Origin: Octopus bimaculoides | Taxonomy: Eukaryota | Reading direction: 5' to 3' | Assembly: GCF_001194135.2 (NCBI RefSeq) | Contig: NC_068994.1 | Span: 5,444,724 to 5,500,951 of the forward strand | Length of the DNA: 56,228 nucleotides | Shown here: positions 1 through 42,940 of the stretch, in pieces | Position numbering within the stretch: the stretch's first letter is position 1 | Layout: each line of letters opens with the position of its first letter | Position numbers and translations under genes: made by a program | The notes under the pieces: model-generated | The model's input: only the letters and a program-made list of their open reading frames with translations | The model's database searches: none | Told to the model about the DNA's origin: nothing

Positions 1-1322
1 AGTTTATCCCGAAAGTAGCCCTGCTGGAAGGGATCTATCATCAGAAGTATTACTCATGTGGCCATCTAGTTTTTCTTTAGATATTGTGTACCTAGTTTTA
101 TATTATCTAATGTATGCTATTTTTATTTCAAACAATAGTGTGTAGTGTAAGGGATGATCCACTGCTATTTCTAGCAGATTATACAAACATTTAAATGTTT
201 TCCGCTGGGACTGTTTATTTTTCAGTCAGACCTGGTTGAGCGAAGCTTACTATGGCGCTTATTCATTCCTCTAAGTTAATTCTTCTGCATCTATGGCTGC
301 ACTGCTTTAGGAACTGCTCCAAGTACATTAGCATTTATTCAACTATCTCTTGTAGTGCATTGTTATCATTAGGTAGTGATCATTTGGTTTGATTGGTGAC
401 GACTAAGTTTTGGGGTTTTTGATGAAAAAAGGGCTTCTGCTCCCATTTTATTAATTAGAAATATGTATGTATCTAGACAATGAAAGTTAATTGTAAGATG
501 AGCCTCCCTTTTTTTTCAGAAACAGTGTATGTACTGTTACAACACGCATTATACCAGTCTCCTTTTAAGGAGGTGAAGTATACTTCTCTGAATATTTTGC
601 CGGTAGTTCCATCACGTCAAGGGATCACGTAGGTACACCACCCATATTGGCTCACGTTCAGTTTGGTGCTTGGAGCACAGATGTGATGATGATTAGAGGA
701 AAGAAGACATTGGTCAATTTATTCTAGCGGTAAACATTCATCAAAAGTAGAGTCTATAGCGTGTTTATTGCGACAATGCAAGTAGAAAATGGCTGTTTTC
801 CATAGTGCAAAGTTCTGATTTACTTTGGTCATCTTTACTTTCGGAATAACAAAGAATCTAGACAGTCTGCCTTTGCTGGGAATGTTAAAACAATATATAT
901 ATATATTTGAAACAAGAGTAAATTGTATATTTGTAAAATGAACAGAAAGACTGATAAACAACAATTGAGACTGAAATGTTAAAATAGGGAAAGACACAGA
1001 AGAAGGGAAGAAAGATATTACAGGGAAAGCAATCTGTGCCATAAATAGTTGTAAGATTTTTAATATATTTCCGCATAAAAACTAATATCTCGGTGGTAAT
1101 AGTAGAAAGTAATCGAGTTAATGAGAAAGATTAAGTCCTATAGATTTGCCAAACAGAATTTTAAATAATGACCATACCAAATCATATAAGATTGATAAAG
1201 TTAATATTCAAAGGTTATTGCGGATATGGATATTTCTAGAAACTAATATAAGAAAGATTTGCAATGAAATGTAATAATCCCTCAGTAATATTATTGAAGA
1301 GGAGATTAAAAGTTTATCTAAC

Positions 1323-1466
1323 CTTTGCACTTATGGTGAAGAACAGACCAGTAATATCCTATCATGCAACCTTCCTCACAGCGTCCAGTGACTTCATCAC
1401 ATTTAGAACCTTCACAGTGTTCACAGCGTTCCATACACATATCTCCATAGAATCCAGGAGCACATT
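1323..1466 (-). CDS. EGF-like (laminin/MEGF10-type) exon of a lectin-EGF ectodomain
   Basis: Minus strand: acceptor ttattgcag|AA TGT GCT, donor AAA G|GTTAGA; 144 nt, phase 1-1; (Q)CAPGFYGDMCMERCEHCEGSKCDEVTGRCEEGCMIGYYWSVLHHKCK has MEGF10/CED-1-type Cys spacing and splices in frame from the 2494-2676 exon. Confidence 0.92.
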
Positions 1467-1675
1467 CTGCAATAACAAAAATGATAAAAAATGAAAATAT
1501 CACGGTTAGTGTATATATTTCACTAACGTTAGCATCTAATATTCAGTTGTAACGATATTTTATAGAATGAATATGGTTTAAATTTAATGATAATTTGTGG
1601 ATATCTTGATGTCACTGATAGATCAAATATTACATATAATTATATAAGATGATGACTATAAATTTACATCTGCGT

Positions 1676-1840
1676 TCATGCTGGAGAAAATGCTTAGTGA
1701 CATGTCATCCGTCTTTACGTTCTGCGTTCAAATTCCGGCGGAGCCGATTTTTACTTTTCGGGGTTGATAAGATAAGTACCAGTCAAGCAATCGGGTCGAT
1801 GTAATCGACTTGACTCCTCTCACCAAAATTTTAGGGCTTC
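1676..1840 (+). mobile_element. tRNA-derived SINE, family B (partial)
   Basis: aaatgcttag...gttcaaattccg...cggggttgataa...aagtaccag...gggtcgatgtaatcgact core shared with many copies in the window. Confidence 0.8.
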
Positions 1841-2493
1841 AAAGAAGAAATAAGGAGTAATCTTTTAGTGACCTCAAAAATGAACATAACCATGCAGAGG
1901 GCGAATATTTGAAAACACATCATCTTATCGAATCATGTAAAATGAAAGAAGATGAGTGAATGAAAGTTGGAGAGAGTGTAATGGTACATAGAATTGTATA
2001 TTTAGTTTATATAGTGAAATATTTGTTATATCAATCGTAATTAGCTTTATCAATGCTCCAATCAATACCAGTGGGAAGTTTTATGGTCAACAGAATGACT
2101 TTGCTCATTGGATATAGAGTTCTTGACTGTAGGTAAGCAGTATGCCAGTATATTTGACAAGTGTTTGCTTAACCTGTAACAGAGAATTGAAATCGTATCA
2201 CTAAAGCGTTACTATTTAGGAAAACCAGGGCGGAGGAGGGGCAAAGAGGTGGGGAAGCAGAAAGATTTCAAAACCGAACCAACTATCTAATGGTAATTAG
2301 TATGTTCATTTATGTTCGGAGTTCAAACCCCGCTCTATATATTTTACCTTTTAAACTTTCAGGATCGATTACAGTTATCAGTCAAGTATGGAAGTCAAGA
2401 TAATCGGTTGTACTTTATCTCAAAATCGATAGCTCTGTAACATTCTCATAAATCAATATTTACCAAGTGAAATAACAAATAAACATAACTTAC

Positions 2494-2676
2494 GTATTAC
2501 TTCCACTTCACATAGAGTAAGCATTTTATTCCATCCATCTAACGATATTTTGACATAACTTGAATTGAGTGGTTTTCTACATTTAATATGAATTACATCT
2601 TTATCGTATTCAGAATAGATACTTTGAAAACAAAGTGATGATCCAGCATAAACTTTAAATCCTTTCAGCCTGTCAC
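2494..2676 (-). CDS. C-terminal half of an F-type lectin / F5-8 type C (galactose-binding-like) domain exon
   Basis: Acceptor ttttggttctag|GT GAC AGG, donor ATA C|GTAAGT; 183 nt, phase 1-1; GDRLKGFKVYAGSSLCFQS...IKCRKPLNSSYVKISL...MLTLCEVEVI matches the FTP-domain end motifs (DRL.GF.VY, YV.I, LTLCEVEV). Confidence 0.9.
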
Positions 2677-2813
2677 CTAGAACCAAAATATAAGAGCAAA
2701 ANNNNNNNNNNAATCAGATGTTAGTTATATTGAGAATAATTTGAAAAGAAAGATCATCAAGCAAAGGGTTTACCTTTTTATAATTTGTCTCATTAAATAA
2801 TCGATAACACAAT

Positions 2814-3142
2814 ATGTACTGGAACTCCGTCGGTTACGGCTACGAGGGTTCCAGTTGAGTTGAGCAACGGAACAGCCTGCTCGTGAAATTATATTTCAAG
2901 TGGCTGAGTACTCCACAAACACCTGTACCCTTAACGTAGTTCTAAGGGAGATTCAGCGTGATGCAGGGTGTAATGAGGCTGGCCCTTTGAAATACGGATA
3001 CAAGTCATTCTTCCAGCTGAGTGGACGGGGGCAATGTGCAATAAAGTGTCTTGTTCAAGGACACAACCCGTCGCCGGGAATTGAACTCATGACTTTGTGA
3101 TCGTTAGACGAATACCCTAACCACTTAGCCACATGCCTTTTC
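2814..3142 (-). mobile_element. tRNA-derived SINE, family C, with 14-bp target-site duplication
   Basis: Pol III A/B-box head on the minus strand near 3060-3140; ATCGATAACACAAT at 2800-2813 and 3143-3156. Confidence 0.85.
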
Positions 3143-3192
3143 ATCGATAACACAATGAGTTGAAAAAAAATCAATAATTGAGATATTTTTTC

Positions 3193-3640
3193 AGGCATGT
3201 ATACAGGTGTGTGGTAAGAAGCTTGCTTCCCAACCACATGGCTCCTGGTTCAGTCACACTGCACAGCACCTTGGACAAGTGTCTTCTACTATAGCCTCGG
3301 GCCGACTTGGGCCTTGTGAGTGGATTTGGCAAACAGAACCTGAAAAGAAGCCCGTCGTATGCATGTATATATATGTGTGTGTGTGTGTGTGTCTGTGTCT
3401 GTGTGTCTTTGTNNNNNNNNNNGTGTGTGTGTGTGTGTCTGTGTCTGTGTGTCTTTGTTTATCCCCCCACTGTCGCTTGATGTTGGTGTGTTTATATCCC
3501 CGTAACTTAGCGGTTCGACAAAATTGACCGATAGAAGTACTAGGCTTAGAAAGAATAAGTCTAGGGGTCGATTTGTTCAAGCAAAGGCGTTGTTCCAGCA
3601 TGGCCTCAATCAAAATGATTGAAACAAGTAAAAGAATAAA
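3193..3640 (+). mobile_element. tRNA-derived SINE, family A, with internal (TG)n
   Basis: gtgtggtaag...ggttcagtc...cttctactatagcctcgggccg...gaaacaagtaaaagaataa; homologous to 30049, 52425 and 53478. Confidence 0.88.
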
Positions 3641-3897
3641 ATAATATATATGCTTATATGTATATTCGTGATGGGGTAGGCTCTGCACAGTTGGCGCTTT
3701 GTTTACGTATTTGCTTCATATTCATTTGTTCGGTTCTTTTTGTGGCTCTCTATATTTAACGTTGAAATGTATTCCTTTGTAAAAATCATATTAGTTATAC
3801 ACGTTTCTGTTAATTAGAAACTTTAGCAATGTCTCTAGGATCGTGAAGATAAAATGTAACGAACATCTTATTTTGAGGGTGGGTTGAAATGGTCATA

Positions 3898-4887
3898 GGA
3901 TGACTATGAAGGAGTGCTGTGAGAGCTGTCAAATATTGAATGCATTAATTTCAACACTGCTTATTAATAATAACTGTATTGTTTTTTTTTCCTCAGGTAA
4001 ACTGATATCTGACAGCTCAAAGAAGACCTCAAAAGTAGCTAGTAGCAACTGCATGTATGACGTCATCATCTCTGCAAGACTCGTTCCCAGACAGGATTTC
4101 TCATGACGAGGAACAGAGGATGATGAAATGGAGTCAAATCAGGGGAATAGGGAAGGTGCTTAACCAGTTCAAAGCCGTATTCATGCAGAGCAGCCATTGA
4201 AAACAAAGACTTGTCCGCTTGACGATTGTTCTGATGAAACAAAATAACTTTTGTCAGATTTCTTGAGCGCTTAGTCTTCATATATTTTTATATCTGCCTC
4301 AGCAACTTGGCATAGTACCCGCCATTGATGGGGCAGCCCCTTCAAAATAGTCAATAGATACAATACCTTTGCATCCTCAAAAACTGAAACCATCACCTTG
4401 CTGCAGGTGTAACGACCTAATCCATCTTTGAAGTAGAGGAGGTGGGGTGTTTCTACTCCATCTATTGTCTTTTTGACTCTGTCTCAAAGTGATAAACCCA
4501 ACACGTATCTCGGCTTAGGAAATTATTCAAGGAAACTAGCTGGACCTGCTCCAAACAATGTCAGATTTCCCCGTGATGTTATACGTCTGGTGCGCTTTTG
4601 ATCAGGTGTCATTAGACGTTGCACCCACCAAGCAGAAACATTCGTCATGACAAGTTCATGTTTAATGTGCAAAGTATTTTCATCTCNNNNNNNNNNNNNN
4701 NNNNNNNNNNNNAGTGTCAAATTTTGTCCATTTTCATGAGAATTCGCTTCTAGTAACATTTGAAGTCTTCTTTGAACAGTCAGATGTCAGTTTACTTGGA
4801 AGGAAACAGTACAGATATTAAGAAGTAGAGTTGAAACTTAATGCATGCAAGATTTCTCAGCTCTGCATCACTCCTTCATAGTCGTCC
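3898..4887 (-). mobile_element. Defective mariner element with long (~135-150 bp) TIRs, TA-flanked
   Basis: TA|GGATGACTATGAAGGAG... and ...CTCCTTCATAGTCGTCC|TA; broken transposase with WWVQRL (WVPR-like) and LPYSPDL motifs. Confidence 0.9.
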
Positions 4888-5321
4888 TAAGAATCTTTCA
4901 GCCCACCGTCGTATATCTAGAATATCTCCAGTGTAAAATTTCAATCTGAAAGCTAGTAGGAATTAAATTAAACAACATGAAACAGTTTGAAATTTTTGTC
5001 AATGTCATTTTCCTGTACCACGTAGAGAGAAGTGGATGTTCCTGTGTATTCATTCACACACATTCATACGTTACGATACACATTAATGATAGACAAGGCA
5101 AACAACTACAGATACAGACACAGAAATATATTTCCTTGTTTTCTATTAAATCTATCTATCTATCTATCTATCNNNNNNNNNNNNNNNNNNNNNNNNNNNN
5201 NNNNNNNNNNNNNNNNNNNNNNNNNNNNNNNNNNNNNNNNNNNNNNNNNNNNNNNNNNNNNNNNNNNNNNNNNNNNNNNNNNNNNNNNNNNNNNNNNNNN
5301 NNNNNNNNNNNNNNNNNNNNN

Positions 5322-5355
<34 letters not shown>

Positions 5356-5589
5356 AAACAAACACATACATACACATAGCACAAACACACACATACACAC
5401 ACGAACACACACACATATAACTGATTAATGAAACAGAAGAGGNNNNNNNNNNTACACACACGAACACACACACATATAACTGATTAATGAAACAGAAGAG
5501 GGATTTTGGGGTAATATTTATTTTCACTCCAGACTAATATTAAACGCATCTTCTGTTTCTTTTATCAATTATTATCTCTAACTAAGACT

Positions 5590-6162
5590 GCGGAATTCCT
5601 GAAGTAAATCCAACGGAAATATACCCCAATTGCGGATGACACCTGGTAGCCCAAAGTGTGGCAGTGCTTTACTCACCGCGTCAACACACTAATTAACAAA
5701 GCTGTCCATTACCCGACAGAGTTCCTTAATTCTCTTGTGACACCTGGAATTCCTCCACATAAAATTTTTCTGAAGGTAGGAATCCCAATAATGCTTCTAG
5801 GAAATTTAGATCCTCCTAAATTATGCAATGGGATAAGGTTGATTGTGAAGACATTATCACCTAAAGTGATAGAAGCTACCATCATCACTGGATGTGCCTC
5901 TGCGGAAGAGGTTTTCGTTCCAAGAATTTCAATCAAACCAACAGATATGCCCTTTGAATTCAAACGAACACAATTCCCAGTGCGACTTTCTTTTGCAATG
6001 TCTATTAATACAGCTGAAGTTTAGTCTTTGAAATCTACTGGCTTGATTTTCTCATGGTCAACTTTGTTTGGTTGCTCCAGGGTAAGTAGTTTGCAAGACT
6101 TATTTGTCTATGCTCCAAACCAGACAACAAGGAATGTTGTTTACCCAGAAGCGCTTACATAA
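5590..6162 (+). mobile_element. Helitron-type PIF1 helicase C-terminal fragment
   Basis: FLNSL...GIPPH.I.LKVG.PIMLL.NLDPPKLCNG.RL...QFPVRLSFAMSIN...SHGQL...NVVYPEALT*; contains stop and frameshift. Confidence 0.88.
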
Positions 6163-6765
6163 TTTCCTTCAACTAATGTGGTAGAATTTATTTCCCTTCA
6201 TTAAAGTGGTGAGTTTTGTATTTTCGTTTATTATTATTATTATTATTATTANNNNNNNNNNNNNNNNNNNNNNNNNNNNNNNNNNNNNNNNNNNNNNNNN
6301 NNNNNNNNNNNNNNNNNNNNNNNNNNNNNNNNNNNNNNNNNNNNNNNNNNNNNNNNNNNNNNNNNNNNNNNNNNNNNNNNNNNNNNNNNNNNNNNNNNNN
6401 NNNNNNNNNNNNNNNNNNNNNNNNNNNNNNNNNNNNNNNNNNNNNNNNNNNNNNNNNNNNNNNNNNNNNNNNNNNNNNNNNNNNNNNNNNNNNNNNNNNN
6501 NNNNNNNNNNNNNNNNNNNNNNNNNNNNNNNNNNNNNNNNNNNNNNNNNNNNNNNNNNNNNNNNNNNNNNNNNNNNNNNNNNNNNNNNNNNNNNNNNNNN
6601 NNNNNNNNNNNNNNNNNNNNNNNNNNNNNNNNNNNNNNNNNNNNNNNNNNNNNNNNNNNNNNNNNNNNNNNNNNNNNNNNNNNNNNNNNNNNNNNNNNNN
6701 NNNNNNNNNNNNNNNNNNNNNNNNNNNNNNNNNNNNNNATCTATCTTTCTGTTTGAATGGTGAAG

Positions 6766-6800
<35 letters not shown>

Positions 6801-7559
6801 TCCGATATGTTAGGAAAACTTTCNNNNNNNNNNNNNNNNNNNNNNNNNNNNNNNNNNNNNNNNNNNNNNNNNNNNNNNNNNNNNNNNNNNNNNNNNNNNN
6901 NNNNNNNNNNNNNNNNNNNNNNNNNNNNNNNNNNNNNNNNNNNNNNNNNNNNNNNGGATCAAAACAGTTTGATTCAAATTCGTTGGTACTCTTGAGTTTC
7001 AAGCACGATACTAGTCGTCAGCCATTTTGAATTTGAATGACAAATTGATCGTTATTACAGTGAGGTGGGATGCACTTGGTGTGATTTGATGTTGGTTTAT
7101 GGGTAACAGTTAGCTGGAAAATACCGCTCGGCGAACAGGAAATTGACCATGTGGAGGGCAGGAAATAGACTAGAAGTCGGTCAGGTNNNNNNNNNNGGAA
7201 ATTGACCATGTGGAGGGCAGGAAATAGACTAGAAGTCGGTCAGGTTGTTGGCGGGGAGTAGGAAATGGTGGCATGTGCAAGTCTATAGTTTTCCATGTGA
7301 GTGTGTAGATGCACTCATATAGTTTTGCGTTCATGTGTTTATTGGTGCGAGTGAGCGCATTTGTACATAGGCGCGCACGCACACTTCTGCACACACAAAC
7401 ACAAACACACGCACACGCNNNNNNNNNNNNNCACGCTTGGAGGAACATTCATGCGCGCGCACAGACACACAGAGGCTTGGACGAACGCGCACGCACACAC
7501 ACATACATACACACACATGCACATACGCACGCACCCACACACATGCAAATTGTTGCAAA

Positions 7560-7995
7560 TTGATGGTTTCGGTCTCAGATTCCTGGTTAACATTTCACTG
7601 TCGCCTACACAGGTGACTGTACATCTTTTTTTCCAGGTAATGTCCCAATACAAGTATTCTTGCGTCTCAAGAACCGGTTAGCGTCTGTTATTTTNNNNNN
7701 NNNNGAAGGTTGAATCCTAAATTTCGTTTTCACTCCATACTATGTCTCCTGGATACTGGTTTAAAATGATAGACCGAGGTCTCATTTCTTGTGACTATTC
7801 TCTCCAAAAAAGCTTCGACTTCGTCCTTATAGCGGTCGAATAAGCGTTGACAGATCTCCACACATTTNNNNNNNNNNCTTCGTCCTTATAGCGGTCGAAT
7901 AAGCGTTGACAGATCTCCACACATTTGGACCTATGCACTTCGGTAAGCTTTCTTGCCGCCCATCTGGCACGAACTTTACGGAAGGAAAGATTGTG
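7560..7995 (-). mobile_element. Mariner transposase remnant (second family)
   Basis: IIHHNLSFRKVRARWAARKLTEVHRSKCVEICQRLFDRY...FLERIVTRNETSVYHFKP resembles the WVPRxL and IVTGDETW regions. Confidence 0.8.
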
Positions 7996-8230
7996 GTGGA
8001 TTATTTGTATATACTTTTTGACTTACTTTTGTATTTTTTTTGTGTGTGTGTNNNNNNNNNNATTTGTATATACTTTTTGACTTACTTTTGTATTTTTTTT
8101 GTGTGTGTGTATGTGTGTGTGTGTTTGTGTGTGTGTGTATGTGCATGTGTGTGGTTGTGTGTGTAACATTACGAATTAAATGCGACTCTAATAATGTAAA
8201 CGTTCGCACGTACATACTTTATGTGTTATG

Positions 8231-8264
<34 letters not shown>

Positions 8265-8317
8265 NNNNNNNNNNNNNNNNNNNNNNNNNNNNNNNNNNNN
8301 NNNNNNNNNNNNNNNNN

Positions 8318-8349
<32 letters not shown>

Positions 8350-8359
<10 letters not shown>

Positions 8360-9412
8360 GTGAGAATTTACAAAAAGAAAAGACGAAGACAGGTATGTAA
8401 ACAACAAACAGATGTGTTAGCTTAACGCGCTGGAAGAGAGAAAGTCTTAAACATTTCGAGCCTACGCTCTTCGACAGAAAGGAATATAGAAATAAACAGG
8501 GAGAGAAAATAAAGAATGTTTGGTGGTTAGCGATCTATCATGGCGAATGCCGGACAGAGGGGGACAAGGGTGTGGGTGGGGGTTAGGCTGAGTGTGGAGT
8601 ATGTGGGAATGAGGTGTAATGGATAGGGTGGGGTNNNNNNNNNNNNNNNNNNNNNNNNNNNNNNNNNNNNNNNNNNNNNNNNNNNNNNNNNNNNNNNNNN
8701 NNNNNNNNNNNNNNNNNNNNNNNNNNNNNNNNNNNNNNNNNNNNNNNNNNNNNNNNNNNNNNNNNNNNNNNNNAGAGAGGGAGGGTAGGAGTGAAGAGAA
8801 ATAGGTGTCAGAGCAAGAGAGGCGAGGTGATTGAAGTAGAAGTGAGAGGAAGAGAGGAGAAGGGAGGAGAGTTGAGCTCATGTGGCGCAANNNNNNNNNN
8901 NNNNNNNNNNNNNNNNNNNNNNNNNNNNNNNNNNNNNNNNNNNNNNNNNNNNNNNNNNNNNNNNNNNNNNNNNNNNNNNNCCCCTGTACAAGGACAATCC
9001 GAACACAGACAAGTGTTGCAAAGAATGACCGGTAGAACGGAAATGGCGCGAGATCGAGATGTCATTTTCTAGTCGGATGTCTCGGAGGTGTTCCGCGAAC
9101 CGGTCAGCCAAGCGGCGTCCNNNNNNNNNNNNNNNNNNNNNNNNNNNNNNNNNNNNNNNNNNNNNNNNNNNNNNNNNNNNNNNNNNNNNNNNNNNNNNNN
9201 NNNNNNNNNNNNNNNNNNNNNNNNNNNNNNNNNNNNNNNNNNNNNNNNNNNNNNNNNNNGTCAGCGATATGATAGGGTGGATGATGGGTGCCTATGAGGA
9301 GGGTGGTGCTGGAGAGGTATGGGCAAGTTCGGCTTTGTGGGCGGGAGCAAAGGAACAAGCCGGGTTGGGAGGTTGCGTTAGGGAAGAAGCTGTGGGCCAA
9401 GAGGTATAACAC
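8350..9412 (-). mobile_element. Penelope-like retroelement 3' part (GIY-YIG endonuclease plus terminal repeat)
   Basis: PGLFLCSRPQSRTCPYLS...HIAD and ADRFAEHLRDIRL.ND..ISRHFRSTGH; gapped. Confidence 0.85.
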
Positions 9413-9584
9413 AGTATCAATAACAACGTAATTTTAATAGAAAGAAAACAATTCATCATTTAATTATGATTCAGTCATAAAAATACACACGGCATTCATT
9501 AAAATCCATAACGATCTAAAGTCAAGTAATGCAATGGAAATTAGAAGTGTTATAGATGGAAAATAATTTTTACATTATTCACAT

Positions 9585-10129
9585 TTGACGGCTATCTGTC
9601 CTCATCTTGTTTGTTGCTAACACAACTTTTCCGCGGATATATTCTCCAGCCTTTATCAGGTGTCCTGGAGAAATTTCGAACCTAAGTTCTCATTCCTAAG
9701 GTATTTTCCTGATGTTATTTTATTATTATAATCGAACTCGGAATCTTGGGCTTAGTAGACTGCGCCCTTAACCACTACGCCATATACCTGTAGGCAATGA
9801 TGGAGTGAATTTTGGGGCTTATAAATCTTATCTTTTCCTATCCTTCCTTAATACTGGTTCCCATGTGCTACTCATCTGCATTCGCTCTGCTTAGGAGGCT
9901 GTTGTGTCCTAACATATGTGCTGCTTCTTTTAGTTTTCGTATTTTCTAGTGGTATTCTCTATTATTTTAACTTCATTCCACAGGGGAAGATGATCTCCAT
10001 TTTTCCATATATGANNNNNNNNNNGCTATACCCGATTTATCAATATCTCCTCGGGTCTCAGCTTTGCGATGTTCCTCTAGGTTAAGAGCGCGGGCTACTA
10101 ACCCCAAGATTCCAAGTTCGATTCCAGAC

Positions 10130-10140
<11 letters not shown>
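9585..10140. mobile_element. Composite repeat: Penelope-type terminal repeat plus inverted pair of tRNA-like SINE heads
   Basis: 9730-9785 and 10075-10130 are reverse complements (ggttaagagcgcgggctactaaccccaagattccaagttcgatt), each next to an (ATT)n tract. Confidence 0.55.
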
Positions 10141-10174
<34 letters not shown>

Positions 10175-11655
10175 NNNNNNNNNNNNNNNNNNNNNNNNNN
10201 NNNNNNNNNNNNNNNNNNNNNNNNNNNNNNNNNNNNNNNNNNNNNNNNNNNNNNNNNNNNNNNNNNNNNNNNNNNNNNNNNNNNNNNNNNNNNNNNNNNN
10301 NNNNNNNNNNNNNNNNNNNNNNNNNNNNNNNNNNNNNNNNNNNNNNNNNNNNNNNNNNNNNNNNNNNNNNNNNNNNNNNNNNNNNNNNNNNNNNNNNNNN
10401 NNNNNNNNNNNNNNNNNNNNNNNNNNNNNNNNNNNNNNNNNNNNNNNNNNNNNNNNNNNNNNNNNNNNNNNNNNNNNNNNNNNNNNNNNNNNNNNNNNNN
10501 NNNNNNNNNNNNNNNNNNNNNNNNNNNNNNNNNNNNNNNNNNNNNNNNNNNNNNNNNNNNNNNNNNNNNNNNNNNNNNNNNNNNNNNNNNNNNNNNNNNN
10601 NNNNNNNNNNNNNNNNNNNNNNNNNNNNNNNNNNNNNNNNNNNNNNNNNNNNNNNNNNNNNNNNNNNNNNNNNNNNNNNNNNNNNNNNNNNNNNNNNNNN
10701 NNNNNNNNNNNNNNNNNNNNNNNNNNNNNNNNNNNNNNNNNNNNNNNNNNNNNNNNNNNNNNNNNNNNNNNNNNNNNNNNNNNNNNNNNNNNNNNNNNNN
10801 NNNNNNNNNNNNNNNNNNNNNNNNNNNNNNNNNNNNNNNNNNNNNNNNNNNNNNNNNNNNNNNNNNNNNNNNNNNNNNNNNNNNNNNNNNNNNNNNNNNN
10901 NNNNNNNNNNNNNNNNNNNNNNNNNNNNNNNNNNNNNNNNNNNNNNNNNNNNNNNNNNNNNNNNNNNNNNNNNNNNNNNNNNNNNNCACTTTTCTGTACA
11001 TAACTATAAAAAATGTAGTATATACTTAAAATATACGAAGTTTGTATCATCCCAAAGTACCAGATGGGAGATAGCTGTTATAAGACAAAAACTTAACATT
11101 TATAAACTAAATATTCATAAAAAATCAGGCAAGAATATCGAGAAAGTTAATATTATATCACATAAAAATTCCTTAAACTCTACATAAGGCTGAATTTTTA
11201 GCGCTAACTTATTTTATATTACATACTAGATAACTTTCTAAATTGATAACATAAAATAATATTTGGCAAAAACTTTCGCGTATGACTCAAAGATTTTGAA
11301 GGCCGNNNNNNNNNNNNNNNNNNNNNNNNNNNNNNNNNNNNNNNNNNNNNNNNNNNNNNNNNNNNNNNNNNNNNNNNNNNNNNNNNNNNNNNNNNNNNNN
11401 NNNNNNNNNNNNNNNNNNNNNNNNNNNNNNNNNNNNNNNNNNNNNNNNNNNNNNNNNNNNNNNNNNNNNNNNNNNNNNNNNNNNNNNNNNNNNNNNNNNN
11501 NNNNNNNNNNNNNNNNNNNNNNNNNNNNNNNNNNNNNNNNNNNNNNNNNNNNNNNNNNNNNNNNNNNNNNNNNNNNNNNNNNNNNNNNNNNNNNNNNNNN
11601 NNNNNNNNNNNNNNNNNNNNNNNNNNNNNNNNNNNNNNNNNNNNNNNNNNNNNNN

Positions 11656-11735
11656 CTCACTGTTATCCAATGGGTGAAAAAACACAATATGCAACTAAAC
11701 GATGACAAGTCTTATAAAAATTCTGCTTGTCATTA
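11656..11735 (+). mobile_element. Small LINE RT fragment
   Basis: TVIQWVKKHNMQLNDDK resembles the post-YADD W...N.MQLN.DK segment of CR1/L2 RTs. Confidence 0.5.
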
Positions 11736-12099
11736 GGTTACTTAGCCCATCAGTAAAGAGAAAAGGAGGGAGAAAGTAAAGGAGAGAGAGAGAAAGGAGG
11801 GCGAGAGAAGCCGTCACGACATGAGGTTGGAGGAACATAATTGTAAAGCTTTCACGTGATTAGTTGAAGGGAAGAAAACGGTGAGAGAAAAGGAGGATGA
11901 GGCGAAGAGAGAGGCATAAAGAGGGAGAAAGAAAAAGAGGGAGAGAGAAAAAACAGAAAGAGAAGCGTCCAAGACATGTGGTAAGGGGAACGTAATATTT
12001 ATTACGTGATTAAGAAAAATAGTTGAAAGTATTTATATAGAGGAGAGTTAGGAATAAAATTTTAGCAGAGTGATGTTCTGTAGAGAAAGGCAGAGAGAA

Positions 12100-12140
<41 letters not shown>

Positions 12141-12269
12141 NNNNNNNNNNNNNNNAGAGAGAGAGAGAGAGACAGTGAGGGATGACGGTGGTGGTAGTGG
12201 TGATGTTGGGTGCATAGTGTGAAATAGGCTTTTTTCTTAAATTGAACTAAGTTTTTTATATCACCTATT

Positions 12270-12454
12270 ACTTGACGCATGCGCATCCTAATCCTGCCAT
12301 TCACTTTAGAAAGAAACTAGTTTCCGTTCGCCTTTCATATGCAATAAATATCAATAAATCACAAGGGCAGACATTTGATAAAGTGGGGTTGTTCTTGTCT
12401 AAACTTGCATTCGGCCACGGTCAGGTATTTATTGCATTCGCAATGGTTCTCAAA
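12270..12454 (+). mobile_element. Second Helitron/PIF1 helicase fragment
   Basis: FRKKLVSVRLSYAININKSQGQTFDKVGLFLSKLAFGHGQVFIA (PIF1 TINKSQGQT / FSHGQLYVA motifs). Confidence 0.85.
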
Positions 12455-13039
12455 NNNNNNNNNNNNNNNNNNNNNNNNNNNNNNNNNNNNNNNNNNNNNN
12501 NNNNNNNNNNNNNNNNNNNNNNNNNNNNNNNNNNNNGCAAAGAAGTAATGGATTGAAAGATGTGCGCAAATTGAAATGTGTATTGGCTCTGACCAATCAC
12601 CTTGCCGTATAATTTACCAACGATATGGTTTTCAGAGTATGCCATGCTGCATTAAATGTTTACCACCGTGAAATTGTGACCCCAATATTTTACATATAAA
12701 ATAATCTTTTTTTAATATAAAATTTTTGTGTTCTATATATGAAATTGTGACCATGTAAAATGTGAAAGTTTCCCGTTTTGGCGATAAATGCAAAAATAAG
12801 GGTTAATATTTATTTTATGGGTGCTGTGTATTAAGTCTACAGAAGTGTGCATAAAGTATATAAATTATATATATAAAGTGCATTAAGTAAAAATCGTATT
12901 CTAATTTCCTTCACTTTTCAATGAATAGCAGATGAGCAACTATCTTTTGATANNNNNNNNNNTCCTTCACTTTTCAATGAATAGCAGATGAGCAACTATC
13001 TTTTGATACAGAAACAACACAGTCCACGCTTTCAGGCTT

Positions 13040-13800
13040 TTGTATACAGTTTTCGGGAACAACCCAAGAAGTTTACTATTGATTCCATGAAATATTCACG
13101 AGTCCCACAAATTCTGAAAAGAGGTTCCACATAAGCTACCATATACTGTTCTCCTACGTGAAACCCTCGTGGTATCAAGCACTGCTAGGGACCTCGGAAA
13201 AACAGTCGATAACAACTTAGAATAGAGGGACCGCATAAACNNNNNNNNNNAAAACTGACATGATCCGTATGTTGTGCTCCTGGATCCTAAGAATTTTCAG
13301 GTTCAGAGATGCTCCTACCATTATACTTCTCTTCCCTACCGAAGCCCGTCCTCATGTACAATACTGTTGTGCGCTTTGGTCTCTCGACACGAAAGTAAAT
13401 ATCATAAAAATTGAAGCACCCCAGAGATCAAGAAAAAGCAAAACATGTCAGGGCTTGATTTTTGGGATCGGCTCCAGAAATTCAAACTTTATTTCCTTCA
13501 ACTTCACCATGAGAGCTATATCATTCGTATAATGCGAAAAATATTCCAATATTGTTCAAATAGCGTTGGTATCAACTTTAACGTTCATCCTAGACTTGGT
13601 CCTAATGCCATTCGTACTCTACAAAAATCGTCCTCGCATCCAATCACAACACTAAGACAGAAGCGTTTCACCTCAACTGGCCCTGCTTTCTTTAACATCA
13701 TGCCAAGACACATAAAAGAAGAAAAAGATCTCATGATATTCAAACATTCCCCGGTTGAATATCCCGAACAAATCCCAGATAAATCAAGTACACTCGGATA
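13040..13800 (+). mobile_element. CR1/L2-type LINE, RT C-terminal remnant
   Basis: RDLGKTVDNNL, RIFRFRDAPTIILLF...RPHVQYCCALWS, MSGLDFWDRLQKFKLY...HPRLGP; frameshifted. Confidence 0.82.
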
Positions 13801-14143
13801 NNNNNNNNNNNNNNNNNNNNNNNNNNNNNNNNNNNNNNNNNNNNNNNNNNNNNNNNNNNNNNNNNNNNNNNNNNNNNNNNNNNNNNNNNNNNNNNNNNNN
13901 NNNNNNNNNNNNNNNNNNNNNNNNNNNNNNNNNNNNNNNNNNNNNNNNNNNNNNNNNNNNNNNNNNNNNNNNNNNNNNNNNNNNNNNNNNNNNNNNNNNN
14001 NNNNNNNNNNNNNNNNNNNNNNNNNNNNNNNNNNNNNNNNNNNNNNNNNNNNNNNNNNNNNNNNNNNNNNNNNNNNNNNNNNNNNNNNNNNNNNNNNNNN
14101 NNNNNNNNNNNNNNNNNNNNNNNNNNNNNNNNNNNNNNNNNNN

Positions 14144-14168
14144 TTACCATACAACTGTGGTGGACAAC
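14144..14168 (-). CDS. Start of a probable EGF-like exon running into the 13801-14143 gap
   Basis: Acceptor tatcaatttag|GT TGT CCA CCA CAG TTG TAT GGT AA = (G)CPPQLYG(K/N); phase-1 start and the CPxxxYG pattern; only 9 codons visible. Confidence 0.5.
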
Positions 14169-14399
14169 CTAAATTGATAACATCGAAACAGTTTCTTTGT
14201 AAATGAGCATTAAAATAAAACAGTTATTGAATATAAAATTCAATCTTACAAGATCTCATATATGAAGTAATTTATCAACAAGAGATGCTATTTTCTACGT
14301 TTAACTTTTACAGTCTTAAAAATGTAGAAATTCTTGCAATATAAGAAATCAAAAATTATGCGATTCTTGTACATGTACAAACTACATAGGCTACAGTTC

Positions 14400-14570
14400 A
14401 GACCCTACCGTATCTAGAATGTGTGCCGCCCGGGGTGGCCCTTCCGTTTGCTGCCCCTAACCCCACAAAAGTAGATATTGCCTACAGCAGAACCAAAATT
14501 GGTGCCCCTTTAAAAGTGCCACCTGGGGCGGACCAACCCTACTGCCTCCAACCGTAGCTACGCTAGTGAG
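14400..14570. mobile_element. Small GC-rich MITE-like element
   Basis: gccgcccggggtgg and cctggggcgg internal repeats, ending tagctacgctagtg. Confidence 0.4.
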
Positions 14571-14850
14571 TTTAGAACAGTTTAAAGCATCGTAGCCGAG
14601 AAGAAAGACTTAAAATGATTATATCAAAAAGAAATAAACAGTATGTTAACATTGCAGTTTTGAGTTACGGGCACACTGGGCAGTTGTGTAGAGGCCTTTT
14701 GTTTTTAAGGGCCCAATTATGATATATATATATANNNNNNNNNNGTGTAGAGGCCTTTTGTTTTTAAGGGCCCAATTATGATATATATATATATATGCTG
14801 TGTCTTACTGTTAGTATGTAAATATTATAGGCATTAGTTCAATGACTTAC

Positions 14851-14883
14851 CCGTAGCGAGGGCTACATTGCTACTAAGGTCTG
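14851..14883 (-). CDS. 33-nt micro-exon, probable N-terminal ectodomain segment
   Basis: Acceptor ctaccttag|CA, strong donor ACG G|GTAAGT; phase 1-1; DLSSNVALAT joins in frame to GCPPQLYG. Short, so chance cannot be excluded. Confidence 0.45.
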
Positions 14884-14940
14884 CTAAGGTAGTGCATGTA
14901 TGTATGGGTAATATATATATATANNNNNNNNNNATATATA

Positions 14941-15440
14941 TATTCCGATTTGAAGCCACAAATTTGAAGCATAAACAAATGACCGAAAAATTATGAGCTA
15001 ACTTCAGGCTGAATCGAACCCACAAATCGACACCTATACGGCTCCTTGCAAATTCTATTAGCCAAGCGCTCACCCGTCAATTTCAGTTAAATTTAGTTAA
15101 TATATACTGAAACTGTCTAATACTGCATATAATATTTTTGTAAACAAACTCGAAAGGCTTTGTAAGTTAAGGGGAGAAAGCTACTATGTAAGACTCATAG
15201 TATAATAATAACCGTATAATAATATATCATTATATTTACTCTCCAATTTGAAGCGACAATTTTTAAATATAAGCAAATGACTGAAAAATAATGNNNNNNN
15301 NNNAATTTGAAGCGACAATTTTTAAATATAAGCAAATGACTGAAAAATAATGAGCTAATTTCAGTCTGAATCGAACCTACATATCAACGCTTACTCGTCT
15401 CCTTGCAAATCCGATTGGCCAAACGCTCACCCATCAGTTT
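14941..15440 (-). repeat. Tandem duplicate (~300-bp period) of a tRNA-like Pol III head
   Basis: Two copies of tttgaagc...gaatcgaacc...ccttgcaaat...gcc..cgctcaccc; minus strand shows TGGCTAATAG and GGTTCGATTC boxes. Confidence 0.7.
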
Positions 15441-15689
15441 NNNNNNNNNNNNNNNNNNNNNNNNNNNNNNNNNNNNNNNNNNNNNNNNNNNNNNNNNNNN
15501 NNNNNNNNNNNNNNNNNNNNNNNNNNNNNNNNNNNNNNNNNNNNNNNNNNNNNNNAGATAAAAATAGTTATTTCCAGTTTACCGGGTTACCCAAAGTGTC
15601 GCGTCCATGAAGTACTTAACTTAACAGTGTCTCTAGTCCCTAATTCACGAAAACCATTTAGTCTATGGAAAATATTGAAATAATTATAT

Positions 15690-15756
15690 TTATCTAAATA
15701 CTCTTCTACTCTGTAACTTATAGTGAGCTCCTCTGTCGTATTTGTGATTTGCTGAC

Positions 15757-15798
<42 letters not shown>

Positions 15799-16657
15799 NN
15801 NNNNNNNNATATATATATATATATAAATCGAAGGTAGATCAGAAAGAACACAACAAACAGAAACCGTCAAAACACAACATGCGGGAAAAGGATGATAGCA
15901 CGACAACGGCAAACAGGACAAGCAAGACAAAGCGGTCATTCGCAACCAAATAGCTTCTTCAGTCGGAGTCCGGAATGTCTGCGTAGTTTCGCCCTCTTAA
16001 CTCCGATATTACTCGAAACCGGCTGGGCCAGGGAGTTAAGCTAAAAGCATTAAGCCTGTGAGAAAGGCAGACGAATGTAAATACACAAAAATAAATAAGT
16101 AAATAACGGAAAGGGTTTTTCGGCTATCGGACAAACGTAAAATATGAAATAGAATTATATATATACAATGGACAAACGCCTTTCGGCTATACAACAAAAT
16201 AAAATAATTATACAATTACAACAAAAATAAGACAAAACGAAAAGGGTCTTTCGACCATCAGACGAATGTAGTAAGCTAGCGCAAGGAAAAAAAAATGGAA
16301 AAATCTTAACTGGGTGGGCGGCAGGACAGAACAGAACAGACGGGCACGACCGACCTCTAAGGTGGCCGGCCGAAAAAGGACGACAACGCCTGAACCGGAC
16401 AGTGTTTACGTGGTATGAGAAGGGAGGATTTGAAAAGGGCAGAGGGCCTAAAGAATAGGAGAGAGGAGAAAGAAATTAGAAGGACCAAAAAATGAAAGGG
16501 AGGGGAGAGAGAGGAAAAGGTATATGAGAGTTAAGAGAGTGAGAGTCGTACATAATATTCAAGGGGTATCTTTTTTACAACGTACACAAGTTGTACTTAA
16601 CGCTGCTTGGATAAATCAAAGTTTGCACAGAAAGAACACAACAAACGGAAACCGTCA
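15690..16657. mobile_element. Probable Penelope-associated repeat debris with internal duplication
   Basis: agaaagaacacaacaaac(a/g)gaaaccgtca occurs at ~15840 and ~16630; purine-rich tract similar to the 8350-8900 region. Confidence 0.4.
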
Positions 16658-17149
16658 NNNNNNNNNNNNNNNNNNNNNNNNNNNNNNNNNNNNNNNNNNN
16701 NNNNNNNNNNNNNNNNNNNNNNNNNNNNNNNNNNNNNNNNNNNNNNNNNNNNNNNNNCTTATTTTCACACAGTTTTGTTCTGCTAAACCTTGTCATGCAT
16801 TGGTTACTCGCACATAGTTCTCTTCCTAACATATCAATGTGAGATTATCCAATTTATAATTTGATTTTATTTTGCAATGGTTTCTGTTGTTGCATTGTCA
16901 TGCTCTCTTTTGCAACATTCGTTTATATCGGCGTCAGTGTTTGTATATTTGGCATCCATAAAGATTGAAAATTAGTGTGGGGTGGTGCGATCTGTATCTC
17001 CATGAATCTAAATGAGCGCTGCAATAAGTGTTTGAATCTGAGAAGGGTATAAATTGAATAAAATCATAATTAACATATCCTCCTCTATCTTCTTTTACTT
17101 AAAACCATGAACTTTTCAATACCCCTTCATGTGTGCATATATATACATA

Positions 17150-17640
17150 TACTATAAATGATAATAATGATCATAACCTTAAAAGCGATCACCATGCGTT
17201 GACTAAATAAAAAAATAAAATATTCCAATATTGGGGCATATAAGCCCTCGATGGAATAAGTTGGCTTTTCATACGCATGGGAATCGGACCCACACCTCAT
17301 ATATTGGCGATAAGTGTGCTAACCGATTACAACCACGCATTTCTTTCCGCTAGATTTAAGACCTATCATTTCGTAGCATTTTTTTAAACAAGCATATGTG
17401 CTTTCTACGTTAATGGAGATGCAGTGATGAATGAAAATTATGGAAATGATACTAATAAATATTATAAGCTTAAAACCTAGAAGCCATCACCGTGTATTGA
17501 CTAAAGAAAATAGCCTGATAACGGGAAATATAAGCCCTCGACGGAAAAAAAGTAGAGTTTTCGTTGGCACGGGGATCGAACCTAGCTTTCTTATATTTGC
17601 GATACGTGTGCTAACCGATACCACTATCTTACCCGCTCGC
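17150..17640 (-). repeat. Second tandem duplicate (290-bp period) of a tRNA-like head
   Basis: ataagccctcga at 17240 and 17530, each followed by a ggga(a)tcg(g/a)acc...gtgtgctaaccgat segment. Confidence 0.72.
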
Positions 17641-17953
17641 CTCTTTTCTTTAAAGATTCTTGAAACGTTATCTCGAAGAGCTTTTAGGATAGAATATTTT
17701 AAACCTGAGAGTTGGCTTAATATCTACATTGATTTTAAGATTGTATATATATCAACGCATAGATATAAGTAACTTATTAATTACTATAAAATATGATAAA
17801 TTATATTAACCATAAATGTTTATAAGCTGCGGAAAAATTGTCGTTAAATAGGAATTTCCAATGGTTAAATAGATTTTATCAAAGTACATTTCTCTCGTCA
17901 TTTATAATTATATACATACATACATACATACATACATACATACATACATAAAC

Positions 17954-18004
<51 letters not shown>

Positions 18005-18184
18005 TGAGGAATGACCGCTTATTTTTGTATGTAATATTATTTTAATCTTCGGATTTTTTAATATGCTAGACCACTGGTTTTAGTTGATTAATATCAATCT
18101 CTACCCTCATTAATAAATTTTATATTTATATTTATATATATATATATACATACATACATACATGTGTATATATATATATATATA

Positions 18185-18243
<59 letters not shown>

Positions 18244-18796
18244 ATATGTATACGTATATAAGAAATCAGTGTTTGTATTAATAGAAACAATTTCAATTTT
18301 GTTTTAAATCTCTTTCGGATGAAGTCAAGGAGGGAATTCACCATCTTTTCCTGAATCGGGGTTTCTGAATGCACTATTTCTTTTCACCGTCTTTCCTCCT
18401 CCACTTCCACTTCTGAGGTTATCGGATACCAGTTTATTCTTATGATCTCGTGGAACTTCATGATTCGGATAAATCGGCTAGCAGTATCACTTCAACTGTC
18501 ATGAATGTAGCCAGTTCAGGTACTGAGAGACCGGACCGACGTGAAGTATTCGAACTGTTCCGGGCTGGTCACTTCTACTTTTGCTAACCCTTCTACATCC
18601 TTGTAACAGTTAATATGGTCGGTATATTAATAAATATTCCTAGAATGTTTACTTCTGATGATGTACTTGAGTACGTGAAATGTATTATGTTATTAAATTT
18701 ATTTCTTTTTCAGCATTGTAGAACTATGACCTTCTTTGCTCATTTTACTAATATTTTTAGTAAAGTCGCTTATATTGCTTTTAAGTATGCTTACAA

Positions 18797-18988
18797 AACC
18801 AGCAATTTTGAGAAAAGGATTAAATCAATTCCATTGGCTCCAGTAATAAACTGGTACTTATGCTCTCGACCTCGAAAGGATGAAAGGCAAAGTCTTCCTC
18901 AGTGGAATTTGAACTAAGAACGCAAAGACGGGCGAAATACCGCTAAGCATTTTGACTGGCGTGGTAACGGTTCTGCCATCTCGTTACC
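18797..18988 (-). mobile_element. SINE family B
   Basis: ctggtactta...cgaaaggatgaaaggcaaagtc...ggaatttgaact...gaaataccgctaagcatttt. Confidence 0.85.
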
Positions 18989-19455
18989 TTGTAAATTCAC
19001 TAAATTTAAAAGCAACCTATCAGAGGTAATAATTGCGTTAAACAGTTCAAAGCAAATAACATGAATAGCAGCAGGAAGCGTAAAGGTCTACTGTGCCCTC
19101 AAATTTTTTTCTTCGATTTACTAAATTTGTTACAGTAGAGGAGACAATCATTTATCACCAACCACCAAGAAAATCAGTTGGTTGGCTGTGAGTACATGCC
19201 TAAGGAGCTGGAAATGCATCCATCAAACTATCTTTGCAGCCGCTGTTACGATGGTTTTCATCTAACGCTGATAGATATTTTGCTTCTAAACACTGCACAT
19301 CCGTAAGATATAGCAACGCCGGACGAATACCGCAGTAAGCAGTAAATTTGTTTTCATGTTGTACGTATATTACGTATGATGCACATATATATGTGTGTCT
19401 TTATGTATAATATATATATGCATATATATGAGTATATATATTTTCATATACATAG

Positions 19456-19489
<34 letters not shown>

Positions 19490-19673
19490 CTGTGCGTGTG
19501 TGCATGTGTGTGTCTATGTGTACATATGTATGCATATACTATTAACTCAGGAGGTTGTGTGTGATGAGTGTACGGTAGCCACCCAGAAGCTTTTATAAGG
19601 GCATTTGCAGGCATTAGCCGTATACAAATTAGAAGGATGTATTTGATTTGTATATTTGTATGTATTTGTGTTG

Positions 19674-19707
<34 letters not shown>

Positions 19708-19993
19708 TGTATATGCATATATATATATATATATATANNNNNNNNNNNNNNNNNNNNNNNNNNNNNNNNNNNNNNNNNNNNNNNNNNNNNNNNNNNNNNN
19801 NNNNNNNNNNNNNNNNNNNNNNNNNNNNNNNNNNNNNNNNNNNNNNNNNNNNNNNNNNNNNNNNNNNNNNNNNNNNNNNNNNNNNNNNNNNNNNNNNNNN
19901 NNNNNNNNNNNNNNNNNNNNNNNNNNNNNNNNNNNNNNNNNNNNNNNNNNNNNNNNNNNNNNNNNNNNNNNNNNNNNNNNNNNNNNNNNNNNN

Positions 19994-20024
<31 letters not shown>

Positions 20025-20058
20025 GTATAAATGACCAATGCATTTTCTCATTTTCCAG

Positions 20059-20152
20059 AGCCGTCTACCCAAAATATCCCGGTGTTGGTGATAGTTCCAT
20101 TGCTGCTGGTCATATTACTAATCATAGGACTGGTGACTGTGATTTGGTTTTG
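20059..20152 (+). CDS. RPTP transmembrane exon
   Basis: ttttccag|AG CCG...TTT TG|GTATGT; 94 nt, phase 1-2; [31 protein letters not shown] is a single hydrophobic helix. Not shown in this frame in the ORF track. Confidence 0.92.
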
Positions 20153-29400: not shown

Positions 29401-30211
29401 TTGAGTGTTCTGTGATTTTAGTCACTCCTTTTCTGTTTAAGAATCACGATTTTAAGTGTCATTTTCTCTTTTTTATTTTTTATTTTATTTATTTATTTAT
29501 TTTGGCAGATTAAGTGTGTGCAGTATTGGCCAGATGAAGAGCATACTGAGTTATTTGGTTCCATCGAAGTTACACATAGCAACACTAGCTATCATTCAAC
29601 TCATATACACCGAACATTTATTATTTCTAAGGTAAGGCATTCCATAATATTTCATGTTATATATGAGTAATGTTACTTACAAGGACTAAAATAGTAGCAA
29701 TATAAAATCAACGTTCATTGAAATATTTCCAAATTTTATTTGAGTAACATTAACAAGAATGGTGAAATTCTGGGAGACCGTTGAATAAAATGTAGCCTAA
29801 CATAAAATTTAATTGCTAAAATAAACATGGAGCGAAAAAAGGAGAAGTAATTTTTACTCCTTTATAATTTAACTGCTTTCTTGCAATAAAATCATCATAT
29901 CATAGGTGCAGGCTGTGTGGTAAGTTGCTTGCTTATGTACATACCTACATCTATATGTATACTTACATGCATATATGGGTACAGGACATAAAAAAAACGT
30001 TAAACACAATGAGAAACTAAAACATAAAGACGAAGACAGAAAACGAACAGGCGTAGGAGTGGCTGTGTGGTAAGTAGCTTGCTTACGAACCACATGGTTC
30101 CGGGTTCGGTACCATTGCGTGACACCTTGGGCAAGTGTCTTCTACTATAGCCTCGGGCCGACCAAAACCTTGTGAGTGGATTTGGTAGACAGAAACTGAA
30201 AGAAGCCCGTC

Positions 30212-30273
<62 letters not shown>

Positions 30274-31283: not shown

Positions 31284-31363
<80 letters not shown>

Positions 31364-31870: not shown

Positions 31871-31910
<40 letters not shown>

Positions 31911-33602: not shown

Positions 33603-33664
<62 letters not shown>

Positions 33665-42600: not shown

Positions 42601-42940
42601 TCGTAAGTTTTCTCTGTTCTAGTCTGTTGGTATGATTCACCGCTTCTTCTAAACGGTCTTCCTTTTTGTCGCACTCCTTTAAGGCAGTACGAACCACCTC
42701 AATTTCCGATACTATTACGTTGACGTCGTCCGTTTAAGCCGAGGCGAAACTAACATATCGTAGATTACGCGGAACGCCCCTCAAAACATACAACTTCAGC
42801 AGTAATGGCTCGAGAGTCAGTACGTATAGGAGAGGCGAGATTGGGCATCAATGACTATTTTGATAGGTGGCCATTTACTTTGGCCACAGAACAGGTGTCG
42901 TTGTACATAGCAGATATTCAGCATCTGAAAACAGGACTGA

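Follow-up and report, generated by a model that had tools for sequence, protein, structure and literature searches.

A lectin-EGF receptor phosphatase gene on opposite strands of the Octopus bimaculoides assembly is most likely the product of a mis-oriented scaffold

We analyzed a 56,228-nucleotide stretch of the Octopus bimaculoides genome, referred to below as the window, in which exons for a lectin- and EGF-containing ectodomain are read from the minus strand and exons for a transmembrane (TM) segment and tandem phosphatase domains (D1 and D2) are read from the plus strand. Judged by sequence comparison, the two sets of exons are the halves of one receptor gene. The gene itself is real and ordinary, but its division between two strands most likely has no counterpart in the actual genome: we conclude that it was very probably created by a shotgun scaffold inserted the wrong way round at a Hi-C join. 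A mis-oriented scaffold block was also ranked first among the explanations offered by a first-pass annotation of this DNA, and it is the one that the evidence favors. Neither a split receptor nor trans-splicing is needed to account for the locus.

Source assembly and sequences compared

The window matches chromosome CM046614.1 of the O. bimaculoides assembly GCA_001194135.2, at about 5,444,724-5,500,951, with 100% identity and gap for gap; window position x corresponds to CM046614.1 position x + 5,444,723. This assembly combines the 2015 shotgun assembly with newly integrated Hi-C data (PMC9068888). According to the supplement of the same paper, scaffolding was done with HiRise and curation with Juicebox, the O. 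bimaculoides shotgun assembly itself was left unimproved, and a "default gap of 100 bp" is mentioned, the last being stated for the squid assembly of that paper (PMC9068888). The O. bimaculoides assembly holds 713,915 contigs, against 2,758 in that of O. vulgaris (PMC10700109).

The O. vulgaris assembly was built from Oxford Nanopore reads, and Iso-Seq was used for its annotation. Its locus, L004, is OX597827.1:73538450-73646356 and is N-free across 2524-107907. From O. sinensis we used VCDQ01002555.1 (L002) and a second, N-free contig (L005), and from O. bimaculoides a downstream tandem paralog locus, CM046614.1 5557416-5582751 (L003). Among the protein models, P0274 and P0128 are O. vulgaris CAI9733298 and CAI9733299, both named "receptor-type tyrosine-protein phosphatase T-like"; P0001 is the NCBI model of O. 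bimaculoides at the window locus, named "PTP alpha" (PTP, protein tyrosine phosphatase); and P0003 and P0140 are O. sinensis models.

Orientation of the two blocks

Comparison with these sequences divides the window into two blocks that meet at a single gap.

1-16657, minus strand: block carrying the 5' part of the gene, in the opposite orientation to the 3' part (L004 25599->9671; L005 20859->1961)
16658-16757, no strand: gap of 100 N at which the orientation switches; the colinear matches end exactly here, those to L002 and L004 coming from the right and that to L005 from the left

The right block (16758-49276) is colinear in forward orientation with L004 62267-107907 at 85-92% nucleotide identity, introns included. 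The left block is reversed: window 1-11128 is colinear with L004 25599-9671, matching the 5' half of the O. vulgaris gene at 82-90% identity, again with introns included, and window 7550-16657 is reversed and colinear with L005, its final piece, 15556-16657, corresponding to L005 3003-1961. Of the bases aligned with an identity of at least 80%, 5315 + 4299 in the left block are in reverse and 1606 in forward orientation; in the right block 24128 + 3045 are forward. The left block ends close to the start of the gene, position 16657 lying about 0.9 kb upstream of the first known exon. On the other side of the gap, L002 and L004 continue unbroken across the point equal to window 16758, which is bridged by one alignment (L002 6313-8616 to L004 60407-62672), and both carry same-strand EGF exons 1.1-4.6 kb further upstream of that point. 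For the O. vulgaris stretch L004 25600-62266, about 36.7 kb with the remaining EGF exons, the window contains no equivalent. In O. sinensis, L005 holds the upstream exon (exon X), the first EGF exon (EGF1) and the exon for the N-terminal half of the FTP lectin domain (FTP-N) on one strand. The gene is co-oriented on a single strand in both related species.

The gap at the switch is itself distinctive, being the single one of 100 N among the 39 N gaps of the window. To its left the contigs have a median size of about 250 bp, and to its right they measure 1.2-6.3 kb, a contrast that fits two different shotgun scaffolds. We infer that the gap is a HiRise/Juicebox Hi-C join between two such scaffolds. 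The first-pass annotation had instead regarded the gap at 19738-19993, which sits inside a (TA)n repeat 66 bp before the TM exon, as the critical one. Because the sequences on its two sides lie next to each other in O. vulgaris (L004 64770 and 64765), that gap conceals nothing. Six further gaps flagged by a program (2702-2711, 3413-3422, 4687-4712, 5173-5321, 5443-5452 and 6252-6738) do not break a claimed exon in any case, and two of them, 2702-2711 and 4687-4712, are each bridged by single O. vulgaris alignments. Around gap 3413-3422, window positions 3179-4204 (approximate) gave no alignment to L004. Within the left block, a sub-block of about 1 kb (4205-5172, spanning gap 4687-4712) runs forward to L004 21474-22459, its neighbors being reversed. 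Either a contig has been flipped locally or a mariner-like element is inverted here, and the sub-block points to orientation noise in the region.

One orthologous gene in O. vulgaris

A profile-free search of representative proteins, based on P0002, led to CAI9733299 and CAI9733298. The latter, P0274, is one 1022-residue model that contains, in order, FTP, EGF, five more EGFs, TM, juxtamembrane (JM) segment, D1, linker and D2; its gene spans L004 10001-97907 on a single strand, with no gap in the fetched stretch. Ectodomain and cytoplasmic exons of the window diverge from this gene to a similar extent at synonymous sites (dS): 0.152 for the ectodomain (108 codons) and 0.165 for the cytoplasmic part (424 codons), which fits one orthologous locus. 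The ratio of nonsynonymous to synonymous divergence (dN/dS) is about 0.98 for the ectodomain and 0.30 for the cytoplasmic part. The suggestion of the first-pass annotation that the halves belong to one receptor is therefore borne out by their orthology to a single O. vulgaris gene. Other single-chain models that combine FTP and phosphatase are P0125 in O. bimaculoides and P0129 in O. vulgaris; given these and P0274, the lectin-EGF receptor phosphatase architecture is real and already annotated.

The O. vulgaris model is incomplete in places. CAI9733298 is truncated at its N terminus, the FTP-N exon reaching upstream of its ATG (L004 9917-10000), and it leaves out an intact, in-frame EGF exon at L004 61073-61222. 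Exon X and EGF1 are present in O. sinensis at L005 2898-2969 and 4584-4751. An annotated 235-residue O. vulgaris model with a weak phosphatase match, at L004 1-4296 on the minus strand, appears, when judged against L005, to lie inside the intron of the receptor gene between EGF1 and FTP-N.

We also considered that the minus-strand ectodomain might belong to a different gene, since identity between the proximal EGF exons of O. sinensis and the EGF exon of the window is only about 34%. This idea was dropped, as P0274 holds both kinds of EGF.

The ectodomain exons on the minus strand

The following ectodomain features were placed in the left block, in their order along the gene.

15590-15661, minus strand: exon X, the upstream exon of the receptor gene (LNGFRELGTRDTVKLSTSWTRHFG), as placed in this assembly
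14146-14196, minus strand: start of the first EGF exon, EGF1 (..NCFDVINLGCPPQLYG), running into gap 13801-14143; exact acceptor uncertain
10175-10986, no strand: assembly gap of 812 N concealing the FTP-lectin N-half exon, placed by mapping its flanks
2676->2494, minus strand: C-half exon of FTP (F5/8 type C-like lectin), 183 nt, phase 1-1; ortholog L004 23041-23223
1466->1323, minus strand: EGF exon, the second EGF of the ectodomain, 144 nt, phase 1-1; ortholog L004 24145-24294

The two exons nearest the left edge are the best defined. They share one N-free contig (1-2701), and splicing them creates the split codon C+AA, encoding Q, with the product LTLCEVEVIQCAPGFYG matching LTLCEVEVLQCVPGFYG of the paralog P0002. 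The FTP C-half exon is flanked by acceptor ttctag and donor gtaagt; it matches P0002 with E 4e-20 and O. vulgaris P0128 at 75% identity. For the EGF exon the corresponding values are E 1e-19 and 70%. The ectodomain exons retain 10 of 10 cysteines, their splice sites and an intact reading frame at 14% divergence from O. vulgaris. By itself the FTP C-half exon gave no Pfam match, the other half of the domain lying in gap 10175-10986; P0002, and an O. vulgaris protein whose C-half is 75% identical, do match PF22633 and PF00754.

The missing N-half can be located from the flanks of that gap. Window 10025-10174 corresponds to L005 20437-20285 and window 10987-11128 to L005 19348-19205, with the FTP-N exon of O. 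sinensis between them at L005 19451-19771, and in L004 the FTP-N exon (9917-10177) likewise lies between flank matches that reach 9814 and 10886. Further upstream, the EGF1 exon with its GCPPQLYG motif agrees with O. sinensis P0140 in 16 of 16 residues and its DNA is 95.7% identical to L005 4520-4633; GCPPQLYGK is present too in O. vulgaris P0279. The remainder of this exon is concealed by gap 13801-14143. Exon X is 83% identical to residues 1-24 of P0140, with DNA identity of 89%, and both its acceptor and its donor are kept in O. sinensis.

The first-pass annotation had proposed four phase-1 exons on this strand. Three of them, the FTP C-half, EGF and GCPPQLYG exons, hold up. The fourth, at 14883 (DLSSNVALAT), does not: it has no homology support, lies on a 179-bp contig between two 10-N gaps and falls in sequence that is intronic in the O. 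sinensis model, where its donor GGTAAGT reads AGCAAGT. Exon X, at 15661-15590, had been overlooked. A pattern scan of the whole window found a single EGF exon, on the minus strand, and no plus-strand EGF or FTP exon, in agreement with the earlier statement that the plus strand carries no ectodomain exon.

The transmembrane and phosphatase exons on the plus strand

The right block carries the rest of the gene.

20059-20152, plus strand: TM exon, starting in phase 1 and ending in phase 2; 75% identity to O. vulgaris
22883-22977, plus strand: JM exon, splicing in frame with the TM exon
23594-35319, plus strand: exon 3 and the D1 phosphatase exons, from tblastn of P0001 and P0128; ends approximate
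38809-44146, plus strand: linker exon and degenerate D2 exons, from tblastn of P0005

Exon 3 and the first D1 exons lie at approximately 23594-23734, 24510-24596, 26578-26649, 27476-27502 and 28466-28567, and the later D1 exons at approximately 29509-29631, 30958-31113, 32901-33038 and 35212-35319, the last of them entering gap 35320-35855. The D1 exons are 83-96% identical to O. vulgaris P0128. The KNRY motif (KKNRYK), the WPD motif and a catalytic loop of the HC(X)5R(S/T) class are present, suggesting that D1 is of the active type. The linker exon (38809-38895) is followed by D2 exons at approximately 40207-40329, 41301-41396, 42005-42154, 43231-43365 and 44069-44146; the start of the exon at 41301-41396 falls within gap 40571-41298, and the stop codon is 44144-44146. 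Where a C(X)5R motif is expected D2 has CSKNFHKSG, so that its catalytic motif is degenerate. Pfam Y_phosphatase matches the cytoplasmic part with E 1.3e-88 in two stretches. With its catalytic motifs, a single TM segment just N-terminal to them and a second PTP-like domain, the predicted product has the features of a classical receptor-type PTP. The TM, JM, active-type D1 and degenerate D2 thus lie on the plus strand from 20059 onward, the strand and start that the first-pass annotation gave for its TM-D1-D2 exons.

The linker exon has one unusual feature. After a run of eleven T it contains an in-frame TAA, at a point where the paralog L003 has ..WGFSFSEIEGEYANF. The TAA could represent a genuine nonsense mutation; use of an acceptor further downstream is the other possibility. 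The NCBI model P0001 omits the linker exon and ends by read-through at 40413; at its other end it has no TM exon and no ectodomain.

A backwards scaffold and the alternatives to it

The arrangement can be accounted for by a simple model. The complete gene would consist of an upstream exon, EGF, FTP lectin, EGF, several EGFs, TM, JM, an active D1 and an inactive D2, and it would have been divided over two old shotgun scaffolds, linked solely by Hi-C at 16658-16757. The scaffold with the 5' half, made up of window 1-16657 and its continuation to the left of the window, would have been inserted backwards. Such a flip would place the upstream region of the gene against the intron that precedes the TM exon, cause the lectin and EGF exons to be read from the minus strand and move the remaining EGF exons out of the window, to the left, where minus-strand orthologs of the EGF exons at L004 28858, 32093, 42750, 46250, 58151, 58506 and 61073 are predicted. 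If the left scaffold were turned round, its far end, predicted to lie at about L004 62266, would meet position 16758 and the gene would become fully colinear with that of O. vulgaris. What one would look for in a Hi-C mis-orientation is seen at the right boundary, which is a 100-N gap, and inside the block, where colinearity is reversed against both L004 and L005; the left boundary falls outside the window.

Some points weigh against a backwards scaffold. It would yield the same assembly as a real inversion, and the two are not separable from the sequence at hand. We infer the Hi-C join from the length of the gap, and the 100-bp default is one stated for the squid. The predicted minus-strand EGF exons would lie to the left of position 1, beyond the window, and the TAA in the linker, together with an ectodomain dN/dS of about 1, would be equally compatible with the decay of a gene that had truly been disrupted.

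If the reversal were a true inversion, confined to O. bimaculoides and extending for about 50 kb from upstream of the gene to its last ectodomain intron, it would imply fission of the receptor into a lectin/EGF ectodomain with no TM exon of its own and a divergently transcribed, ectodomain-less TM-D1-D2 phosphatase. The deposited assembly displays this arrangement, and P0001, with neither TM exon nor ectodomain, the in-frame TAA and the ectodomain dN/dS of about 0.98 would all be in keeping with it. Nevertheless, we regard an inversion as unlikely. Neither breakpoint is spanned by a contig, the visible one being a gap of 100 N, equal in length to the Hi-C default, and the other lying outside the window. 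All ten ectodomain cysteines, the splice sites and the frame have been kept despite 14% divergence, and the cytoplasmic exons, at dN/dS 0.30, are under purifying selection. Moreover, Hi-C scaffolding is well known to be prone to orientation errors where scaffolds are short, and the flipped sub-block at 4205-5172 suggests orientation noise in this very region.

The two halves might also come from head-to-head paralogs, the minus-strand ectodomain belonging to a neighbor whose TM and phosphatase exons lie to the left of the window and the ectodomain of the plus-strand gene being lost in gaps. The family is indeed tandemly duplicated, both on CM046614.1 (P0005, L003) and in O. vulgaris (CAI9733298-306), and the minus-strand O. 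vulgaris model with a weak phosphatase match at L004 1-4296 would suit such a pairing. We consider it less probable even than an inversion, since a single O. vulgaris gene corresponds to both blocks, its 5' half being colinear with the left one, introns included, and its 3' half matching the right one, dS is alike for both halves, and neither half has a second copy in the window. Furthermore, among the top matches the close O. bimaculoides proteins with D1 are P0001 and P0005 only. Trans-splicing between opposite strands, joining the minus-strand EGF exon to the plus-strand TM exon in the manner of Drosophila mod(mdg4), is so improbable that we give it hardly any weight. Its sole support is that the exon phases are compatible, which, as the first-pass annotation itself cautioned, is generic: every EGF exon in the family is of phase 1-1. 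The opposite-strand arrangement is not conserved, both related species having the gene co-oriented in cis; the strands meet only across a 100-N join, not in contiguous verified DNA; and the proposed junction, AAGTGCAAAG followed by AGCCGTCTACC, occurs in no protein of a collection of 5.8 billion sequences. In the canonical protein the two joined exons are separated by at least five EGF repeats, whose exons extend over about 37 kb in O. vulgaris, and the direct EGF-TM junction that had been put forward (HHKCK-E-PSTQ) is accordingly non-canonical. For none of these three alternatives, all of them listed in the first-pass annotation, did we find positive evidence, the gene being co-oriented in both relatives and no contiguous sequence crossing the switch.

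Comparison with known systems

The preferred explanation, a scaffold placed backwards, agrees with known orientation errors in fragmented short-read assemblies that were re-scaffolded by Hi-C with HiRise and Juicebox: the switch coincides with a join of default length, contig sizes differ strongly across it, and each block is internally colinear with the long-read assemblies of two relatives. The difference is that the type of join is here deduced and not read from a record. The O. vulgaris genes CAI9733298/CAI9733299 provide the ortholog of both halves but have all their exons on one strand. For Drosophila mod(mdg4), the layout of the DNA has been verified and transcripts are known. The octopus locus resembles it only in that its 5' and 3' exons seem to occupy opposite strands, an arrangement that exists only over an assembly join and is absent in the relatives.

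As to the protein, the best non-cephalopod matches are vertebrate PTPRA and PTPRE (R4 subtype), which are 34-43% identical in the cytoplasmic part and share the order of a single TM followed by tandem D1-D2. Unlike them, the octopus D2 lacks the catalytic arginine motif (CSKNFHKSG). The PTPRA/PTPRE ectodomain is short and glycosylated and has no lectin or EGF modules. The octopus ectodomain is closer to mollusc proteins that combine FTP/F5-F8 type C lectin and EGF modules (annotated variously as fucolectin, MEGF10 or draper), which likewise have FTP (PF22633/PF00754) and laminin-type EGF on phase 1-1 exons; in the octopus, by contrast, a TM helix and a tyrosine phosphatase follow the putative lectin and EGF modules. 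A literature search for a described lectin-EGF receptor phosphatase family returned nothing specific.

Gene family and consequences for annotation

The receptor belongs to a family that is tandemly duplicated and expanded in octopus, with an FTP-lectin/EGF ectodomain, and that is already in public annotations. About 113 kb downstream, on the plus strand, there is a tandem duplicate of the unit from TM to D2 (window 19149-46262 against L003 1-25336, 77-96% nucleotide identity including introns), and a 352-residue gene model lies upstream of this paralog unit on the same strand, a layout that speaks for a backwards scaffold in the window. O. vulgaris has a run of neighboring family models, CAI9733298-306; the O. 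vulgaris protein P0004 was not placed on any contig. A homolog search with a chimeric query of ectodomain, TM and D1 returned P0001, P0002 and P0003 only, and a search with the O. sinensis EGF exons, TM and JM returned nothing new, the 352-residue model upstream of P0005 not being recovered. A fast-evolving ectodomain (dN/dS about 0.98) that keeps all its cysteines, combined with a conserved catalytic part, is the pattern that would be expected of a recognition receptor.

These results flag a probable mis-oriented scaffold of about 50 kb in the O. bimaculoides reference, at CM046614.1 5461381-5461480. Such an error would account for the NCBI annotation of the locus, which consists of just a truncated "PTP alpha" without a TM segment (P0001). 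More generally, surprising gene structures in the O. bimaculoides assembly should first be checked against the long-read assembly of O. vulgaris.

Additional observations

In O. sinensis L002, three EGF exons and the TM exon each have a 1-bp deletion relative to O. vulgaris, and one of the EGF exons has a 2-bp insertion as well (indels at about 4283, 4743, 6995, 7090 and 8976); there are none in about 510 bp of the JM and D1 exons of the same contig. The indels look like uncorrected long-read errors, and they probably explain why the NCBI model of O. sinensis, P0003, starts only at the JM exon. We had considered that the EGF exons upstream of TM in O. sinensis might be decaying pseudo-exons, each being frameshifted, and rejected this because those of O. 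vulgaris are intact and single-base deletions are typical of long-read errors.

Finally, some open reading frames of the window were judged by eye from their translations. These are a mariner-like transposase remnant at 4056-4684 on the minus strand, a Helitron/PIF1-like helicase fragment at 5650-6021 and a non-LTR retrotransposon ORF2-like tail at 13415-13798, both on the plus strand, and a C2H2 zinc-finger frame at 55907-56227 on the minus strand, which leaves the window at its right edge.

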